The notes below the pieces were generated by a model, which did not search any database, was not told the origin of the DNA, and saw nothing but the letters and a program-made list of their open reading frames with translations. From Styela clava (lineage: Eukaryota): a DNA stretch of 64,000 nt. The stretch lies in the NCBI RefSeq assembly GCF_964204865.1, contig NC_135258.1, positions 9,796,001 to 9,860,000 on the forward strand, given 5' to 3'. This document shows, one piece after another, positions 26,024-63,960 of this stretch. Numbering within the stretch: the first letter of the stretch is position 1; every line of letters starts with the position of its first letter. Position numbers and translations under genes: made by a program.

Positions 26024-29000
26024 TTAACTTTCTTCCTCTTCCTCCTCCTCCTCTTCTTCTTCATATTCAACGATATTTCCATCCGCATCAACATAATTAC
26101 CATCTTCATCCATATAGATAACTTCTTCATCAGAACCGATCTCCTCATCATCTTCTTCTTGACTGTCGTAGTCTACTGGATTTCCATCTGCATCCACGTA
26201 ATTGCCATCCTCATCTTGATAAATTACTTCCTCGTCTGATCCAAGTTCCTCATCGTCTTCATCAACATAAACAATTTCATTTCCATCTTCATCAACTTCT
26301 ACGACTTCGACGTCACTTCCATCAGATATTTCATTTCCATCTGAATCAACGTAGATATATTCGACTTCTTCATCACTTCCGTACTCTTCCTCATCGTCTT
26401 GTTCTTCATCTTTTGGTTTTTCTGCATCGGTAATGATGGATTTTGTCTCTTCGTCAAGAGGATCTTGATTGGCGCTAATATTTAATTTCTCTTTCTGTTC
26501 ATCTTCATTTACAAGATTTTCGCCCCCCTTGTCTTCTGAACTTTGTCCGGTCTCTTGAAGCTTTTGTTCAGCTTCCTCAGTAACTTTTCGTTCAGCTTCT
26601 TTGTTTTCAAGACATTCTCGTCCTGCCTCTTTCTCTTCTAGCCGTTTCCGTTCGGCCCTTTCCTCTTCTAGACGTTTTCGTTCGGCCTCTTCATCGTCTA
26701 GCCGTTTTCGTTTGGCCTCTTCTTCTTCTTGCCGTTTTTGTTCAACTTCTTCCATTAGTTTTTGTTCGGCCTCTTCGTCTTCTATCCGTTTTCGTTCGGC
26801 CTCTTCTTCTTCCAGTCGTTTTTGTTCAGCTTCTTCCTCTAGCCGTTTACGTTCGGCTTCTTCTTCTTCTAACCGTTTTCGTTCGGCTTCTTCTTCTTTT
26901 AGCCGATTTTGTTCGGCTTCCTCTTCGAGTCTTTTTCGTTCGGCTTCTTCCGCTTCTAACCGCTTCCGTTCGGCCTCTTCATTTTCTAACCGCTTCCGTT
27001 CGGCCTCTTCTTCCTCTAGCTGTTTTCGTTCAGCATCTTCCTCCTCTTGCCGCTTTCGTTCGGCCTCTTCTTCTTCTAGCCGTTTTTGTTCAGCTTCTTC
27101 CTCTTCTAGCCGTTTTTGTTTGGCCTCTTCATCCTCTAGCCGTTTTCGTTCCGCCTCCTCAACTTCTAGCCGTTTTCGTTCGGCCACTTCTTCTTCCAGC
27201 CGTTTTCGTTCGGCTTCTTCTTCTTCTAGCCGTTTTCGTTCGGATTCTTCTTCTTCAAGCCGTTTTCGTTCGGCTTCTTCTTCTAGCCGTTTTCGTTCGG
27301 CTTCTTCTTCTTCAAGCCGTTTTCGTTCGGCCACCTCTTCTTCCAGCCGTTTTCGTTCGGCCTCTTCTTCTTCAAGCCGTTTTCGTTCGGCTTCTTCTTC
27401 TTCTAGCCGTTTTCGTTCGGCTTCTTCTTCTTCTAGCCGTTTTCGTTCAGCTTCTTCTTCTTCAAGCCGTTTTCGTTCGGCTTCTTCTTCTTCTAGCCGT
27501 TTCCTTTCGGCCTCTTCTTCATCTAGCCGTTTTCGTTCGGCCTCTTCTTCTTCTAGTCGTTTTCGTTCGGCCTCTTCTTCTTCTAGACGTTTTTGTTCGG
27601 CCGCTTCTTCTTCTAGCCGTTTTTGTTCAGCCTCTTCTTCTTCTAGCCGTTTTCGTTCGGCCGCTTCTTCTTCCAGTCGTTTTTGTTCGGCCGCTTCTTC
27701 TTCCAGTCGTTTTCGTTCGACCTCTTCTTCTTCTAGCCGTTTTTGTTCGGCTTCTTCTTCTTCTAGCCGTTTCCGTTCAGCCTCTTCTTCTTCTAGCCGT
27801 TTTTGTTCGGCATCCTCCTCTTCTAGGCGTTTTCGTTCGGCCTCTTGCTCTTCTAGCTGTTTTCGTTCGGCTTCCTCTTCTGGTCGATTACGTTCAGATT
27901 CTTCTTCTAGACGTTTTCGTTCGGCCACTTCTTCTTCTAGTCGTTTTTGTTCGCCTTCTTCTCTAATTATTTTTCGTTCAGCTTCCTCTTTAAGTCGATT
28001 ACGTTCAGCTTCTTCATTTTCAAGGCGCTTTCGTTCAGTTTCTTCTTCGATTCGTTTTTGTTCAGCTTCCTCCGCTTCGAGTCGTTTTTTCTCAGCTTCT
28101 TCTTCTTCATATTGTTTTTGTTTAGTTTCTTCTGGAAGGAAGTTTTGACAAGCTTTGTCCAAATGTTTCATGACTTCTTCTTTTGCCATTCTTTGTTCTT
28201 CGCTGTCTTTGTCATCTTCATCTTCGGCAGATATTACTTTACCATCTTTCAGTCTCTTATACTCCTCGCCCGTATCGATATAAATTCTTCCACCAAATCC
28301 TTCTATTTGTCTTTCTTGTACAGTTTCTGGTTTGTTTCTTGGGCAGGGTTTTGGTGCGTTCTCTTCCTTGCTTTCTGTAACTACATTGTCGTTGGCAGAT
28401 TCCTCCGAGCCAACGTTCTTTTTCTTCCTAGGTTTTCGTGGTGATGGAGATGCGCTTCTTTCTGATATATTTTCGTTTGTATTTTTGCTTGAAGCTTCAA
28501 GTCCCTCTTCCAGATATGAATCTTTGTATTCGGTTTCAGTGATTTCTTCCTCTTCTCCTTGCTTTATATGAGCTTTTATCATTCCAATTGTCGGCATAGC
28601 ACTTGTGCCTGAAAACGCAAGGCCTTTCAAAAGCTTTTTCTCTAGATTTTTAGAAACCAACTGTTCTCTTTTTTCACTGACGTCACCAGCAGATATTTCT
28701 GTGTCAGACTGTTTGTCTAATGTATGCTGTGCTTCTACCGATTTCTGGAGATCTTGAGTTCTGGCCGCTAGAGGTTTAATATTCATCATCGATGCACGTA
28801 CGACACGCTGTCGACCAGGTGGGCGGTCTCCAATTAAGTGAGCTGGAGAAAAAGGTATAGATATGATCATTTTAAAAATGTGACTCTAATGACATTCCGT
28901 GAAGACATCATTTTGTGCAAGAGATTGAGGATAGTGCAAAGTGCAAACGTACCGGTAAATAATGGAACAGAAATATGAACAAACCTGTGTTAACGTTTTC

Positions 29001-55200: not shown

Positions 55201-58200
55201 ATCTCAGTGGAACACTTCGGAAAGTTCTGAACTCTCTCTCATGACTATACTCTCAATTTAAACTTCCTATAGTGAATTTAATTCCAGATTTAATTTCAAA
55301 CCAGAGATAATTTGACCATTTCATATTGAATAAAATAGGACCCAAATTATTTTATGATATACAACTTCATTATCATATTGCTGCAGCTGCATCATATTTT
55401 ATTATTTATTCATATCATGAGCTGTAAAGAATTTCATAGCCATGTATTAAACCCACTTTTTTATATGATTCGAATTTCAGTAAAACCATATTGGACAAAA
55501 ATAGACCGAATGCAGAAGAGACTTCATGCTGAACCGGCAGGAAACACTGTGAGGTTTCGTTGTCCAGTTGATGGGAATCCTGTACCGAGAGTGGATTGGT
55601 TTAAAGATGGAAAAATTATTAAGAAAGATAGTAGAATTGGAGGTGTCAAGGTATGAAGATAATCAGCCTATAGTGTAATAATTCATTAGTACTTTTTAAA
55701 TTGACTGTATCATATGAAATATACCGTAATTCTTTTGGTGCCTAGTAGATCAGACGGAATTTGAATTAGTCGAATATTTTAGTGGGATATGCATAAATAC
55801 TACTAGTTTAATAATAGAGCGATATCTATCGGCATCAGTTCATGATTTAAAATCGCAAGCAAATTTAAAATTTTTGGATATAAGGGGAATGGTGAACTAC
55901 AATATCATGATATGTTACCATTTATAAGTGTATTTATTGCTTTTCATATATTTACTGTCCTACATTATTTGCCAAACCTGTTATTATTTTTTGTCTTTCA
56001 TGTTTCATTTTACAGTATCGTAACAATGGACAAATGATAATATTGGAAACAGTTGTTCCACCTGATCAAGGCATGTACATGTGTAAAGCCAGCAATAAAT
56101 ATGGATCTATTAATCATACTTATGAATTGGATGTGCAAGGTACATTAGTAATTTTAATTATACTGTTTCAATGAGGCAATAGCCCATATTCTTCCTTAAC
56201 TTCAGAAAATGTTAGTTAGATAATAGTTAGTTTAATGTATGAAACACATAGGCATATATCAAGAATATGTAATTTACTAAGTATTTATCATAAGTTAGTT
56301 ATATATATTGAACCCGTATGGTATGTTAAAATGTAGTCTTAGTTTTCTTAATAATCTTGTCGGTGAGTTGTTTGTACAGGCAAAATATGAGACAGCTTAT
56401 TCATATATGAACCATATTAATGGTCTGGGTGAGGTATGAGTTTTGATTCTACTCACAGTAGAATTTTTGTTAGCATAGAAGATCCCAAAACATGTTAATC
56501 AAGGATGCTTGAATAATATTGTAACAGTGAGTTTTAGTAGAAGAGAGTTAATATTCAGTATTTGATTTGAAGAAAACAATTTAAAAATTTAGGTGTTTAC
56601 TAGAAAATAGTGTATTGTGCTAATTTAATGAAGAGCTTTTAGCAACCATGGAACTTGGGGTTAATATTATTGAGTTTGGAACAAGCTGTTTCTGTCATGA
56701 AGGCACTTGACAATTAATATGGTTTAATTTCGAATTGTTGATGAATTTTTTAAGGGTGGATAGTTTGTTTTGTTATAGAAAGACTGAAGTTAGAATAAAA
56801 ATTAACTTTATTAATAAATTAAGGAAAAATTTTTTCTCTCCCACACTTTTGCTAACAGTAACACTGTTGGATAATTAGGATGAGATTAAAAAATGGAGGA
56901 AAACTTTATTCTTTTTATAAATGGGCATATCGTGGCCATGCTAGCCACATTGTTTGCCGAGGTGTAGTAGTGCCTGTTGATAATCATTCAAAATTAAATT
57001 TTCTTAATGATCATCACAGAGCGTGCAGCTAGTCGACCTATTCTCAAGTATGGTCTGCCGGCAAATAAAACTGTAAAAATTGGATCTGATGTTGAATTCA
57101 AGTGTAGAGTGTATAGTGACCCCCATCCCCATGTCAAATGGGTGAGATACGTACCGATCGGCAGCGGGGCTAACGCATCTGAAAAAGTTGTCATTTTAAA
57201 GGTATTGAAGTGTCATTGGTGTCGTTCGCGTATATATTTTCTGTTCTTTTTTCGTGTACTTCTGGGGGCCTGTTGCATGTGAGGCATATTTAGTTTCCTC
57301 ACGCAGCAAAGTTTCTGTTTTCCCTCATAACGACTAACAGTACATGCCAATATCTGCTCCAAAACAAACTTTAGTTGCCATATGCCGGAACATCGCGCTT
57401 TTCGTAGGTGTTGTAACTTGCTTGCACTAATCGTCATGGTAATAAAAACAGGTTAATTTTATCATGATTCATTCTTGATTTGATAAACAGATTTTTGTCA
57501 TCTTCGTGAGTTATTAATTTTTTCTGTTTCTTTTTTATTATATGCATTTCTGCTCTTCTTGTGGTGACCTGTCGTGTTCTACAACGTGTTCGGTGTCTGA
57601 TGTTCTGATGGTGATTTCACTTCTGCCAATATTTTCCACCCTTTTTGTTTATTTCTTCTTCAAATATTAATTTCATCATATTATGCAATAATGTTATCAC
57701 CCAACGCATTTTCATTTTATGCGTCATTCTAACCCTAACCCCATTTATTTCATCCCTTCAATAACTTTTCAAATCCTTGTCCCTTTACCCCTCTCTTCTT
57801 CATGGTTTGAAATTGGATGCCCCGTAGAACGCACTGCTGCTGCTCCTTTGATTCCTGATGGTATCCTGGTTAATCAGACCGTTTTTCTTGGTGATGACGT
57901 CACTTTCAAATGTAAAGTGTTTAGCGATGCCCACCCTCACATTGAATGGATCAAGTCATGGAATGTTGGAAACGATACTAGAGTTGAAGTCCTGAAGGTA
58001 AAAAGATCGTCAATGAATATAAGGTTATGGAAAATGGTACTATGCAATGCATAGCTTCAAATATTTCTATGTGATAAGTGTGCAAGTGTCATCTGTTGGT
58101 ACCAAAATCTAGATGTCACATTACTAAATATGACTATTCGAACCCTTAATCTGATTGCATGATGTGCACTCTGAAGGCACTAGCCTATTCGGCCTATTTT

Positions 58201-61200
58201 GACTTTTCTTTTTCTAAAAAAAAAATTGAAGTCTGTCTTTGTGCGACATGCATGCCACTTATGCACTTATCTCGTGAGGAATATTACACCCTTTTGACTT
58301 GTTTCTTACCTGTTCATTCATCCTATGGCCATTGCATTTTGTTGTTTTATCATTTATCCATCACCTTAACGTTTTATTATAAATATTGTTCCGCTTTTAA
58401 CAATGGCATTCTGTTTATCATCTTTAGCATTCATCATTATTGTCCACATTTTAATGTAGTTTTAACTTCATATTCATTATTGACATTTATTCTTTGCTTT
58501 GACGAACTGTTCTCTTTTCTTTTTATATTATTATATAATATGTTTGCCACATATGGCGCACCTCTTGTCTAGAAATAATTATTTCAGTATCTGAGTATAA
58601 TTATTATCAGTGTATCTGAGTAGAATATATATCAAATGGATATCGCCATTTTTGGGCGGTAACAAAAAATGACAAAAACAAAAAATGGCAATTTTCAATT
58701 TTTATAACTTAGAATAGATATAAGAATAGAATCTTCCCGGCCAAGGATATTTATCCTGGGATATTTTTTTTATTTGGCTCCTTTGATCCTATTACGTAAA
58801 TGTAGATTTATTTTCAGTCAGATTATGGTGTATGACAATCATATCCTGTTTTGCATTTTTTTTCCACACTCCAAACCAATTGCAATTTTTTTTTGTATTG
58901 CAGTCATATCCTGTTTGTAGCATTTCTTGTAAGACTAATTATTTGTCTTCTATATAAATTTCCCATCCGGTCCCACTATTGCTATTAAGGAGTTTCGTTT
59001 TTAATCACCAGATTGAGATGTATCACTTATCCTGTTTGTGTTTTTTTTTATAAGAAACAAAATGAGAAACAATTATTTGTCTTTTAGATTTGAGAGGATT
59101 GTGGCTTTGTTTTCCACAAATCAGTTTATTTTGTATCACAGTCATATCCTGTTTGCATATTTTTTATTCCCAGAATTCAAAAATTCTAAACCAATTGTCT
59201 ATTTTACGGATAAACCTTCTCATCCGGTACCACTGTTCCTATTATGATGTACTTGTTGTGGTTTCATGTTTAAACGCTCGGATTATGATGTATTGCAGTA
59301 ATATCCTGTTTGCGTTTATATTTGTGAGATGCAAAAAAATGTGGAACAATTATCTGCTTACTGTAATTTCCTGTGTTATAACGTATTGTTTGTATTGTTC
59401 CTGTACTTGCATTTTATCACCGGATATTTCATTTGTTATGATTTCTTTGGAATGTGACATTTTGCTTTATATTTGCGTAAATTTGCTGAGCAAACACAGG
59501 CCAGGGGCAACGCTTTGTTTATAGTCATATGAGTGATTTACCAAATATCATCCGCTCTACGGAAGTGTATTTATAACAGAATGATATACGGTACCATTTT
59601 CATGTGGCCATGCATAAATACGCTTGAGCTTAAGTATGTGATACAATAAGCATCACTTCCAAAGTTGATGCTTTCTACGCTCTATCGCACCATTTGTAAC
59701 AAACAATGTGGTTTTGCAAACATTCTTAAGTCTTTGGCTTTTTCTCCAATCGACCGTGTCTACCCACAAACCCGCTTTTGAAGAGACTCTTCATTCCGCA
59801 TGACTAACACAATGATGGCAATTTTCCGATTTGATCCAATTTCAATAAGCCATGAATCCTTTCACAGTCCATTTGTCCTGGTAATAACTTCAAATTGTTT
59901 TCATATTATCAGCAAAACTGCCTTTTTTTTATTTTTTATTGGTGATATCTGTCTGTATAGCTGAGTTTAAAACCAATGATAACTGTAATTATAAGCAGTG
60001 AAATCTATATCATGATAGCATGGCAAATTTGTAATTTTCTTTCAGACGTAAATAATCTTCTCTGGTTGAAAATATTTATAAGTCTGAATTGACCCTGAAC
60101 TGCCCCCCTTTTGGGGTTATAACCGCCCATTATGCCGTGAAAAGTAATAACCTTTATGTTACATTTATTTGAGATATCGTTCCAAATATTATTTCAGAAT
60201 CCATAAAAGAATGGTTTTGTATACATAAATTATAGAGATTTCTGCTGGTCATAATCACCCTTGTATCCATTTTAAATTTAATAAAGGCATTTTATAAAGG
60301 AATCAATGCCTATCAATGAATATCTTTGTTGTACATCAGTCATGAATGGCAATACTGTTATGGTATTTAGAAACACATGAGACATGACGATATTTGCCTG
60401 AATTGATTTTTAATTTTTATAGTTCAAACCATGTTTCACACTTTTTTTATGGGATGCTAAAATCCAAGTAAAATGATATTTCTCTCTACTTTTGTAATTT
60501 TTATTTTAGTTGTATATTGGGAATTGATACATTATTGCACATGACTGCTTTTCAAATACCATATAATGTACATTTTGTATCTGACTCTTGAGTTTACAAT
60601 TTATTCATTGAATATATTTTTCTATGGTGTGCATGCTTTCATTCGCTTGCGGGTGTAAAAACTTGTGATTGGTGACTTTTCTTCCATTTCGAATTATTTA
60701 TAAAATTATTGGTGACTTTTCTTCAATTTTGAATTTTTTATATTGATGGATGAGTACTGATCTAGTTTTGTGTTTAGCAATCTGGTATTAACGAATTACA
60801 AGCTGAAAGTTTATTCATATTCAACGTAACGGAAGAGGACAGCGGAAAATACACTTGCATTGCTGAAAACTATATTGGAACAGAGAATAGTTCTGCGTGG
60901 TTAACAATATCGGGAGGTACCATTAGTAATATAAAACCATGGTGCCTAATCTGGAACTGAAAATTTGGGTGCAGTTGGGTGATGATCTACATCTGGTGCT
61001 AAATCAAAATTATTACAAACACTAAACATCTCATTATATACATATGATGACAACAACTATGCATGATGGTGCGCAAGATTATTGTTGAGTATTTAATTTT
61101 CATTGTTCGTATCTGTTTCCTGTGTTTAGTTGTAATAATCTGTGTCATGTTTACATTGTTATTTTGTTTTTGATGACGTCTGGTGATAGTAATGTGCGGC

Positions 61201-63960
61201 CTTAAGAATGCTATGATCATTGTAATATTGCCTCAAGGCTATTGGTGTTGTGCTATTATGTTTAATTGTGGTGATTTTATTGCTTCTTTTTTTAAGATGT
61301 AATTATTATCTTTCAATCAAATAACTTTTGAATCATACATGGCTCTTTCTTGTGGAAAGATTTTATTAACTGTTGCCCATGTATGATTGAAAAGTCATTA
61401 TACTCCTTGATTACAGCTTACTCTGATTTTAGCTTTTTACTGCTGTGTTTTATTGCTTTGCATATCAAGTTGAAGTAATTTTTTAGATCATTGGTTTATT
61501 TTGTCATTCCACTCGAGTGATCAACTATCATGTGTTGATTTAACCAGAATATATTACATTAAATCAATGGCTATTGGTTGCCTTCCCCACAATGTTTTCC
61601 TTTATAATGACCCCTATTCAACACTGTTTGCTCAGGCCCATTGAACACTCGAAGTTTCATTGTATTTGCCCACAACTACCATTACGGAATCATAATATAG
61701 GAATCTGTGTTTAATCCAGGGATGGCCAAAACTGAATAATCTTTTATCATGAATGATTTCTGAAATAATATTCAAAATCGTGGAATATAATATGTATTTA
61801 TTCTAAATTGGATAATATATACAAGTATTCAATGAGGCTGACTCGATTCGTTTTCCATTTTTATTACAATTTCCAGACAATAATTGAAGATCTTTTTCGT
61901 TATACCGATTACTCCATTGATAATAATAATTTTTTTCTCCAATAAAACTATTCTAAATAAAGAGTCCTATATTTGAAGCATGAAATACCAAATACAATAA
62001 GTTTTATTTGGACATCCCTGAACTATCCCTTGACATTCCACATTATTATTCCCTCTAATTGAAAATATGAAGACATGTCAATGATTGAAATGAGAATTAA
62101 ATCACTAAATTTGCAAAAAACGCACCAGATTACAGTTCAATTGGAAACTAGAAGGAATTCATAATAATCCAGTATAATTTCATACAGTGGTGCACTTAAA
62201 AATTACATTGCATGTTATGGTGACATCTCATAAACAGTTTACTTTGGATGAATTAGAAATATTTAGAAAGAAATTTGTCATCATTAAAGGAATTCTCAAA
62301 TTGATGTATCTGATATCTCCATTTCATTATTTTTATTTTAAATTTAACCTTGTTGCCGTGGCGTTACTCAAATTTGGTATATTTTAAGAAGGCTTGTTTT
62401 ATTTGATATACTAAGTTGCAACCATTTTTCATACATGGTGTTTATCATCATTTCATTAAATTTATGCATATTGTATCGAAATATACCACATGCATAAATT
62501 TCAAACTGCTGGTACTTTTTTTTTTACGCTGCCTGCAATCAACTTTTTTATGCATGGGTGAATTCATTCTCTTACTATATTTATTCATTGACTGACAGGC
62601 TGCTGGTTCAAACACAACCAGTCGCGATATGGAGGTGTTGCAGCTCAAAAATGTAACATTTGCTGATGTCGGCGAGTATACTTGCCTTGCTGGTAACTCT
62701 ATTGGAATTTCTTATCAGAGTGCTTGGCTCCAAGTGCTACCAGGTGTGAATGAGCTTGCTGACTTGTATTCAAATATGTGGGGATTAATTGTTAATCATT
62801 TCCTGGTGTTTTGGTGCTAATTGAATATACTAATGACAGATTGTTAAATTATGCATTTTCTTTTATTGATTTTGTTTATCATGAAGAGACACATTGGCTT
62901 GTCAGTTTTTTCTTAGGATTCCCCAGCCAATTCAATTCTCAACTCGATAACGATTATCAAACGTTTCGCATGTCCATCAGTATGTATATTTCTTTAAATC
63001 ATGTTGTTAGATGTGTTCCTATTCAAGTTTTATATTTTTAATGGAAGAAATTGTTTGGCCTCGATACTCAAAATAAAAGGATTTTTCAACAGTGAAATTA
63101 CAGATTTTCTGTTACATGTAAACGGAATTAAAATATATTCCCATCGAACAATTCGCACTTCCAAATATGTAAAACAAAAATTTGGGCATATTGATGACTT
63201 GATGAAATAGAATGTACCAACCAGGTAACTGACAAGTGACTACTACTTATGTGCCTTCATTTATTTGATGGTTAAACAATATCCCAAGTGATCACGACAT
63301 CTGCATTATCTTATGACTTCTGTTTGTTTTTAATTGATCCTGACTATTCTGGTTTTTACAAAATTATACATATCAAACATGCCCCATTGTTCGTTAGGCA
63401 TAATGTGTTATTGAACATTGAGTTGGCAGCAAACCTGGTTTTGGAATTGAATTTTTCTTGGCTTCCAGGCTAATATAAATAAATGATAAGCCAATGTGTC
63501 TATTGTTAAATATTGAATTGGATAATAGGCTATATATAATTTTTTATACCATTAGCGTTATAACTGTGTACTTTGCATATCACAGACACTCCAAAATGAC
63601 AATCTTTAAATTTCAAATTAAGGGTATCAATTGTCTATAAGACTGTAATCAAGTTATGCTTGTTACTTTATGATACCATTGATATTAATATGGGAGAGTG
63701 CTTCAATGCTTATTTTATAAGAAGGGATTTGAATCTATGGTGTCTTTATGAAGTTATTTACTCATACTTCGAAACATGTACACTTTTTTGACAAATGTTC
63801 TTTTTCTCAAATTAATTTTTTCCAGAGCCACCACCAACAGAACCTACAGCTCTTTCTCAAGAGATGAATTTGATAATTTATGGAATATGTGGAGTGCTTG
63901 GTCTTCTGGTCATTTCTGGAATCATATTGTTCTTCTATTACAACTATTATAGTGGGAAAG
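52300..63960 (+). CDS. FGFR: Fibroblast growth factor receptor, extracellular and TM exons (kinase lies beyond the window): 52300-52426 signal, 52806-53108 IgI, 54627-54683 acid box, 55013-55030 microexon, 55481-55650 and 56016-56139 IgII, 57020-57201 or 57828-57997 IgIIIa, 60778-60916 or 62599-62743 IgIIIb/c, 63826-63960 TM
   Basis: [48 protein letters not shown]...[30 protein letters not shown] and [20 protein letters not shown] are FGFR signatures. All splice phases are compatible. Confidence 0.95.
57020..57201 (+). CDS. FGFR: FGFR IgIII first-half exon, copy 1 (IIIa-1)
   Basis: cag|...|gtattg, 182 nt, phase 1 to 0. [44 protein letters not shown]...VVILK. Confidence 0.93.
57828..57997 (+). 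CDS. FGFR: FGFR IgIII first-half exon, copy 2 (IIIa-2)
   Basis: tag|...|gtaaaa, 170 nt, phase 1 to 0. [57 protein letters not shown]. Confidence 0.9.
58839..59380. repeat. Degenerate intronic tandem repeat (~255-bp unit with CAGTCATATCCTGTTTG subrepeats)
   Basis: CATATCCTGTTTG-like motif at ~58840, 58903, 59025, 59141 and 59297. CATCCGGT.CCACT.TT.CTATTA at 58964 and 59221. Confidence 0.6.
60778..60916 (+). CDS. FGFR: FGFR exon IIIb-like
   Basis: 139 nt, phase 0 to 1. [46 protein letters not shown] resembles vertebrate FGFR1/2 IIIb (HSGINSS.AE.L.LFNVTE...NYIG.AN.SAWLTV). Not in the ORF track. Confidence 0.92.
62599..62743 (+). CDS. FGFR: FGFR exon IIIc-like
   Basis: 145 nt, phase 0 to 1. 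[48 protein letters not shown] resembles vertebrate IIIc. Confidence 0.95.

Follow-up and report, generated by a model that had tools for sequence, protein, structure and literature searches.

In vertebrate FGFR1-3, the first half of the third immunoglobulin (Ig) domain, IgIII or D3, is encoded by a single constitutive exon, IIIa, and the second half is supplied by either of two alternative exons, IIIb and IIIc. Here, we describe a locus in the ascidian Styela clava in which IIIa is itself one of two alternatives, and in which the choice at the second pair is apparently tied to the choice at the first. The locus lies in a stretch of 64,000 nt (NCBI RefSeq assembly GCF_964204865.1, contig NC_135258.1, positions 9,796,001 to 9,860,000), referred to below as the window and used as the frame for all coordinates, and the gene in question is, by its sequence matches, the single FGF-receptor (FGFR) gene of this ascidian. 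Its D3 is assembled from two successive mutually exclusive exon pairs, IIIa-1/IIIa-2 and then IIIb/IIIc. A first-pass annotation had proposed this architecture from the sequence letters, with up to four ligand-binding domains from one gene.

The splicing of this region has been compared across animals. The IIIb/IIIc switch has been dated to stem chordates and is drawn for Ciona; the same study records an insect-specific mutually exclusive IIIa event (Fig. 7 legend), oyster-specific exons, an ambulacrarian exon and the amphioxus exon IIIx, treats the region as a hotspot of recurrent splicing evolution and, in its text and legend, assigns tunicates no lineage-specific exon (Burguera et al. 2017, PMC5703972). 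The insects Tribolium castaneum and Apis mellifera resemble Styela in having tandem, mutually exclusive first-half IgIII exons in a single fgfr gene (Sharma et al. 2015; Burguera et al. 2017), but they have one constitutive second-half exon where Styela has the IIIb/IIIc pair. For Tribolium, reference 42 in PMC5703972 reports in its title that the one fgfr gene acts through two isoforms in FGF8 and Branchless signalling. Amphioxus IIIx is like the extra Styela IIIa in being a lineage-specific alternative exon in the IgIII of a non-vertebrate chordate's single FGFR; it differs in being specific to cephalochordates and, as described there, in being included together with IIIc in an isoform specific to amphioxus rather than replacing IIIa (PMC5703972).

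The second Styela pair matches the Esrp-regulated switch of vertebrate FGFR1-3, amphioxus and Ciona, in that two homologous exons running from phase 0 to phase 1 are alternative in RNA, and a TGGTG cluster just after the Styela IIIb exon is a further likeness. A further parallel is Drosophila Dscam1, in which exon clusters 4 and 6 are likewise mutually exclusive, each encoding half an Ig domain and setting binding specificity; Dscam1 has dozens of variants per cluster and choices that are reported to be independent between clusters, whereas Styela has two pairs in one Ig domain that are apparently linked.

The first-pass annotation knew of no earlier account of a duplicated IIIa, but one exists for insects (PMC5703972). 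For tunicates and the remaining chordates, full-text literature searches returned no such account, and none of a receptor that combines a mutually exclusive IIIa pair with IIIb/IIIc. The databases already hold the forms separately, as a Halocynthia cDNA and a Clavelina model. The principle is therefore known, and what is new is the combination of both pairs in one domain, together with its presence in the sister group of vertebrates, its age and the apparent coupling.

Two exon pairs in a single FGFR gene

All of the exons lie on the forward strand. A constitutive upstream exon encoding the second half of IgII (56016-56139) ends in phase 1, and its donor is joined to either IIIa exon. Exon IIIa-1 (57020-57201; 182 nt, donor GTATTG) encodes a vertebrate-like IgIII first half with the motifs SDPHPH and VEFKC, which we refer to as type 1, and exon IIIa-2 (57828-57997; 170 nt, donor GTAAAA) encodes the derived tunicate copy, type 2, with SDAHPH and VTFKC. 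These are followed by two IgIII second halves, one IIIb-like (60778-60916; 139 nt, donor GTACCA) and one IIIc-like (62599-62743; 145 nt, donor GTGTGA), and by a constitutive exon for the stalk and transmembrane helix (63826-63960; the TM exon), the acceptor of which is joined to either IIIb or IIIc. Each of the four alternative exons sits where the first-pass annotation had placed it, is bordered by AG and GT, and has an open frame in the expected phase, with lengths that leave remainders of 2, 2, 1 and 1 on division by three. Splicing IIIa-1 into IIIa-2, skipping both IIIa exons, or splicing IIIb into IIIc leads to early stops within a few codons. Because the frame runs into such stops whenever a transcript includes both exons of a pair or none, as had been argued from the exon phases, only mRNAs with one exon of each pair encode a receptor.

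The members of each pair are clearly related. IIIa-1 and IIIa-2 share 44% identity over 48 aa (E 1e-18), which bears out the view that they are paralogous yet strongly diverged, and IIIb and IIIc share 51% over 35 aa (E 7e-11). Searches with the exon peptides (tblastn) found exactly two copies each of the first- and second-half exon in the 64-kb window and no third or decayed copy there, and IIIa-1 and IIIa-2 are the only IIIa-like exons in the whole 377-Mb assembly. Each pair is the product of a tandem exon duplication. The translations of both IIIa copies retain the hallmarks of D3 that the first-pass annotation had read in them, that is, the ER linker, the strand-B Cys, the SDxHPH loop (SDxxPH in general form) and the strand-C Trp, and the Y-x-C motif is present in both second-half exons.

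Comparison with structures in the Protein Data Bank (PDB), made exon by exon and not on the joined spliced protein, placed all of these exons in FGFRs. For the IIIa-1 and IIIa-2 peptides, the top matches were the D3 domains of FGFR1-4 (E 2e-19 and 4e-14). The IIIc-like exon matched the IIIc forms of FGFR3, FGFR2 and FGFR1 best (E ~1e-22; 5e-22), with FGFR2b chains at 1e-11. For the IIIb-like exon, multi-Ig proteins ranked above FGFRs by summed score, the longest single match was to FGFR2b chains (residues 2-44), and these were also the best FGFR matches (E 1.1e-16, against 1e-13 to 1e-12 for IIIc forms). Given these opposite preferences, the IIIb and IIIc labels hold. When the FGFR of the stolidobranch ascidian Halocynthia (HrFGFR) was searched against the same genome, kinase exons with 52-84% identity to it, the range for FGFR-like kinase exons being 69-84%, were found 1.6-8 kb past the end of the window; no other kinase locus exceeds 54%, and high identity is confined to a single locus. 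An Ig ectodomain, a transmembrane helix and an FGFR-type tyrosine kinase are thus all present in one gene.

Splicing of both pairs in RNA

Thirteen sequencing runs matched the locus, nine of which, with contig totals of 53-79 Mb, were taken as RNA by guess. We aligned the assembled contigs of four such runs from three studies (X1, X4, X8 and X9) to positions 57000-62800. Exon IIIa-1 was joined to IIIb (57201>60778) in X1 and to IIIc (57201>62599) in X4 and X8, and IIIa-2 was joined to IIIc (57997>62599) in all four runs; in each junction contig the skipped part was bounded by GT..AG exactly at the predicted borders. Contigs reaching back beyond 57020 and 57828 carried the same 27-letter overhang, which matches uniquely to 56111-56137, the end of the upstream exon, and the overhang behind both 60916 and 62743 matches uniquely to 63826-63853, the start of the TM exon. 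These overhangs indicate that each IIIa exon is spliced singly to the shared upstream exon and each second half singly to the TM exon. The donor at 56139 was joined to IIIa-2 in all four runs, IIIb was joined to IIIa-1 and to the TM exon in X1, and the link of IIIc to the TM exon was seen as loose ends in X1, X4 and X8. IIIa-1 also occurred as a separate exon contig in three runs (X1, X4 and X8), and IIIa-2 in all four.

Mature RNA therefore contains three combinations, IIIa-1+IIIb, IIIa-1+IIIc and IIIa-2+IIIc. The second first-half exon, which the first-pass annotation had left dependent on finding spliced reads, is in use, joined on both sides in every run. Of the four ectodomains envisaged, three have been recovered. 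No contig of the four runs joined IIIa-2 to IIIb, though contigs show presence and not absence or amounts. Likewise, no joint between 57201 and 57828 or between 60916 and 62599 was found in the four runs, nor any frame-restoring arrangement that includes both members of a pair, with the limit that contigs cannot prove absence and that nonsense products would be degraded.

In runs X1-X9, lower-depth contigs span nearly the whole of the introns of the gene (window 57000-62800), which indicates that these libraries carry much pre-mRNA or genomic DNA and are not pure mRNA. Intron contigs differ from the window at ~0.6-1.3% of positions, IIIa exon contigs at 0-1 positions.

The spliced contigs themselves cannot derive from DNA, given that the genome search found no retro-copy. 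We consider it extremely improbable that the junctions are artefacts, whether of a paralogue, of a processed retro-copy or of chimeric contigs, and not products of alternative splicing of one gene. Such a reading could appeal to the shortness of the contigs and to the guessed RNA status of the runs, but the genome has only two IIIa-like exons and one high-identity HrFGFR locus, and the same junctions recur across three studies with GT..AG-bounded gaps at the predicted borders.

Apparent linkage between the two choices

Run X1 bears on the relation between the two switches. IIIb and IIIc are both well represented in it, yet the only junction contigs recovered are IIIa-1>IIIb and IIIa-2>IIIc. 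This pattern suggests that the choices at the two pairs are not independent, with IIIb going with IIIa-1 and IIIa-2 with IIIc. Between the combinatorial and coupled schemes that the first-pass annotation had left side by side, the data lean to the coupled one, with three of the four combinations seen overall and two in X1.

If the switches were instead independent and freely combining, all four D3 variants would be made and IIIa-2+IIIb would have been missed by sampling. IIIa-1 pairs with both IIIb and IIIc, so that there is no absolute structural bar to mixing, and rare variants drop out of contigs, of which only four runs were aligned. Set against this are the restricted pairings in X1 and the fact that named relatives show the same ones, type 1 with IIIb in Clavelina and type 2 with IIIc in Halocynthia. 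We judge free combination to be rather unlikely. In its strongest form, the coupled alternative would have ascidians swapping the whole of D3 as co-ordinated halves, IIIa-1+IIIb and IIIa-2+IIIc with IIIa-1+IIIc as a third form, driven by a long-range link between pairs 3-5 kb apart, ancient across ascidian orders, and providing a chordate that has one receptor with a second ligand-discrimination switch that vertebrates lack. We put this forward tentatively, as a possibility that is well short of an even chance.

Conservation and age of the IIIa pair

A HMMER search of 1.84 billion representatives with IIIa-2, followed by cluster look-ups, led to three named proteins. Halocynthia, the closest named relative of the exons, is represented by the HrFGFR cDNA of Halocynthia roretzi (Q95YM9), in which a type-2-like IIIa is followed by IIIc; by hand count, this IIIc differs from that of Styela at 10 of 48 residues (~79% identity). 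The model CAK8675804.1 from Clavelina lepadiformis (Aplousobranchia) combines a type-1 IIIa (SDPHPH, VEFEC) with a IIIb-like half that starts QSGI as in Styela, and a Branchiostoma belcheri protein has one vertebrate-like IIIa. Protein-index searches yielded no candidates with the IIIa-2 exon and the query alone with HrFGFR residues 166-225; with residues 150-275, vertebrate FGFRs filled the list of matches, and none of these searches gave Ciona or Styela models. AlphaFold, run on the single sequence of the D3 fragment from Clavelina, reached a mean pLDDT of 40, too low for the model to be used.

Five further loci (L001-L005) came from a scan of JGI metagenome contigs. Three of them, L001, L002 and L003, carry two IIIa exons in tandem, 415 nt apart and in the same order as in Styela, with AG/GT borders and lengths of remainder 2. 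In L001, type 1 occupies L001:9390-9583 (194 nt) and type 2 occupies L001:9999-10180 (182 nt). The second copy is thus intact outside Styela, with its splice sites and phase, and its type matches the Halocynthia roretzi cDNA, so that the loss or decay in related species that would have spoken against the first-pass annotation is not what these loci show. The GC content is 43-47% and the type-1 exon is 70% identical to that of Clavelina, and our guess is that the host is an aplousobranch ascidian. Between Styela and L001, protein identity is ~55% and synonymous sites are saturated.

The remaining two loci belong to a variant of this sequence. In this variant (L005:381-9840 and L004, with L005 drawn from the sample that also gave L001), ~9.4 kb including LINE-like sequence stand in place of the 522 nt with the type-1 IIIa exon. 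The variant may represent another haplotype, a paralogue or an assembly error.

In a maximum-likelihood tree, the Styela, L001 and Clavelina type-1 exons form one clade (support 83/89), and a second clade (support 96/99) unites the type-2 exons of Halocynthia, L001, L005, P0089, Styela and P0070. Approximately unbiased (AU) tests reject a single clade for the two copies in L001 (p 0.006) and the grouping of Halocynthia with type 1 (p 0.036). Type-1 exons share 57-73% identity with the FGFR1-like IIIa of vertebrates but 43-56% with the type-2 exon of their own genome, so that type 1 is the more conservative of the two copies and type 2 is derived. The comparison shows type 2 as a derived copy common to Styela, Halocynthia and the ascidian-like metagenome locus, and an old IIIa duplication shared among ascidians appears well supported but not proven. 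Tunicate type 1 falls beside the exons of vertebrates and amphioxus, at a point where the tree, which has no insect sequence in it, is not resolved. Judging from this position, the duplication probably arose inside tunicates, independently of the insect event.

Nothing speaks directly for the alternative that one of the IIIa copies lacks a protein role, being spliced in as noise, unproductive or in decay. It could draw on the absence of a type-1 exon from the L004/L005 variant and on the codon differences between the type-2 exon of that variant and the one in L001, 6 nonsynonymous and 3 synonymous. In both Styela and L001, however, the two copies have open frames in which the Cys, the Trp and the ER linker are preserved, as are the splice sites; at least three runs contain each of them as a separate exon contig, joined in frame to flanking exons; the exon contigs are nearly free of differences from the window by comparison with the intron contigs; and each type is present in the cDNA or protein model of a named relative. 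We therefore regard a copy without function as very unlikely.

Control of exon choice

Several mechanisms by which exclusion might be enforced were compared with the sequence. Steric hindrance within the IIIa pair was rejected: a 626-nt intron separates the two exons, and upstream of IIIa-2 its last AG is found 308 nt past the IIIa-1 donor. Incompatibility between U12 and U2 introns was rejected as well, all four donors being GT, U2-type and without a U12-type consensus. Competing RNA structure is unsupported, in that the sole inverted repeat around IIIa-2 is weak. This repeat pairs 57461-57491 with 58410-58440, on either side of IIIa-2, over 31 nt at 74% complementarity and with a perfect core of 11 nt; looping-out of the exon would be conceivable, and the repeat is probably a chance occurrence in AT-rich sequence.

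AG-exclusion zones mark distant branch points and are typical of regulated exons. A pyrimidine-rich tract of this kind precedes IIIa-2 (57511-57827, 315 nt plus the acceptor AG), and its AG-free run of 315 nt is the longest in the window (median 12 nt, 99th percentile 104 nt); the run before IIIc is 181 nt. In L001, the type-2 exon is preceded by an AG-free run of 117 nt and the type-1 exon by one of 15 nt, so that a long run at the type-2 exon in both genomes tracks exon type across species. Under a scanning model, the tract places the IIIa-2 branch point at or after ~57500, ~300 nt or more from the IIIa-1 donor. Exon choice would on this basis be regulated and not sterically forced, and reading frame together with nonsense-mediated decay would leave only one-of-each products.

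For the second pair, the 364 nt directly 3' of IIIb (60917-61280) hold six copies of TGGTG, against 0.43 expected (P 6e-6), which makes this the densest stretch in the window. GU-rich ESRP sites promote IIIb in vertebrates and amphioxus in the account of PMC5703972, and the cluster fits such sites, making it a candidate ESRP-type enhancer whose function we infer from its sequence and position. The RBFOX motif TGCATG occurs once in the same interval and is not enriched there, and so offers no enrichment support for that factor. One further TGGTG lies 16 nt past the IIIa-1 donor. As a matter of speculation, a shared factor favouring both IIIa-1 and IIIb would explain their pairing.

Possible function of the IIIa switch

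In vertebrate FGF-FGFR crystal structures, the D2-D3 linker and the B'-C loop touch the ligand, and loops of the second half of D3 are the main determinants of specificity. Several positions separate the two IIIa types in every species compared. In the linker and strand A', position 5 is Arg in type 1 and Ala, Lys or Ile in type 2, and position 10 is aromatic in the former and acidic in the latter; strand B has Glu versus Thr or Val before the Cys; the B'-C loop reads SDP versus SDA; and the whole C-C' loop differs, including its N-glycosylation sequons, which in Styela are NAS in IIIa-1 and NDT in IIIa-2.

These positions suggest that the IIIa switch may retune FGF binding, and a changed ligand preference would be its most likely function. 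The swap could also be functional without tuning the choice of FGF, by acting on glycosylation, on folding or stability with the partner half, on co-receptor or cis interactions, or on dimerisation. The largest differences between the types, including the distinct sequons, fall in the C-C' loop, a region not known as one of the main contacts with FGF, and non-random pairing with IIIb and IIIc would fit halves that are co-adapted. On the other side, type-diagnostic changes are also found in the D2-D3 linker, strand A' and the B'-C loop, which are FGF contacts in the vertebrate complexes, and insect IIIa isoforms are reported to serve different ligands. A role unrelated to ligand choice thus seems to us the less probable of the two, without being far-fetched.

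A repeat frame elsewhere in the window

Away from the receptor gene, the minus strand at 26024-28870 contains an open frame of 948 aa made of ~47-50 tandem 30-nt units that each encode the 10-residue RLEEEEAERK. The frame is a strong composition anomaly (GC 0.445, AT skew -0.6), and a search for Pfam domains in it gave no match. It looks like a long charged protein of repeats that would form a single helix or coiled coil.

Discussion

Taken as a whole, an account in which D3 is built from two exon pairs, the IIIa duplication is old, the choice is regulated and linked between pairs, and FGF binding is retuned is the best explanation of the locus, and we hold it to be probably right. Several points weigh against it. 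The RNA evidence consists of assembled contigs and not of reads, and IIIa-2+IIIb may exist at a low level or in tissues other than those sampled. The RNA status of the runs was guessed, though joints bounded by GT..AG at the predicted borders argue for mRNA. The tandem pair outside Styela comes from an ascidian-like metagenome contig, L001, and the 96%-identical variant locus without a type-1 exon (L004, L005) may mean that this exon is dispensable in some haplotype, if the contig is not misassembled. A topology with the two Styela copies as sisters is disfavoured by 17 log-likelihood units but falls short of formal rejection (p-AU 0.09). Exons of 56-64 aa are short, and the clades were named after the tree had been seen; it is for these reasons that we hold the old shared duplication to be well supported and stop short of calling it proven. 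Finally, the ligand-specificity role of the IIIa switch is our interpretation of where the type-separating residues lie.

Tunicates are the sister group of vertebrates, and their FGF-dependent inductions rely on one FGFR gene and only a few FGFs. For embryologists who work on Ciona or Halocynthia, the means by which one receptor discriminates among ligands is an open practical question. With another either/or choice inside this Ig domain, the receptor comes in at least three forms, and experiments with one cDNA, such as the Halocynthia clone that joins type 2 to IIIc, may sample only part of the receptor repertoire. The locus would also offer a compact system in which to study linked choice at separate mutually exclusive pairs, with the 315-nt AG-free tract and the TGGTG cluster as landmarks, and it contributes a chordate example to the record of splicing changes that have evolved repeatedly at the FGFR hotspot.

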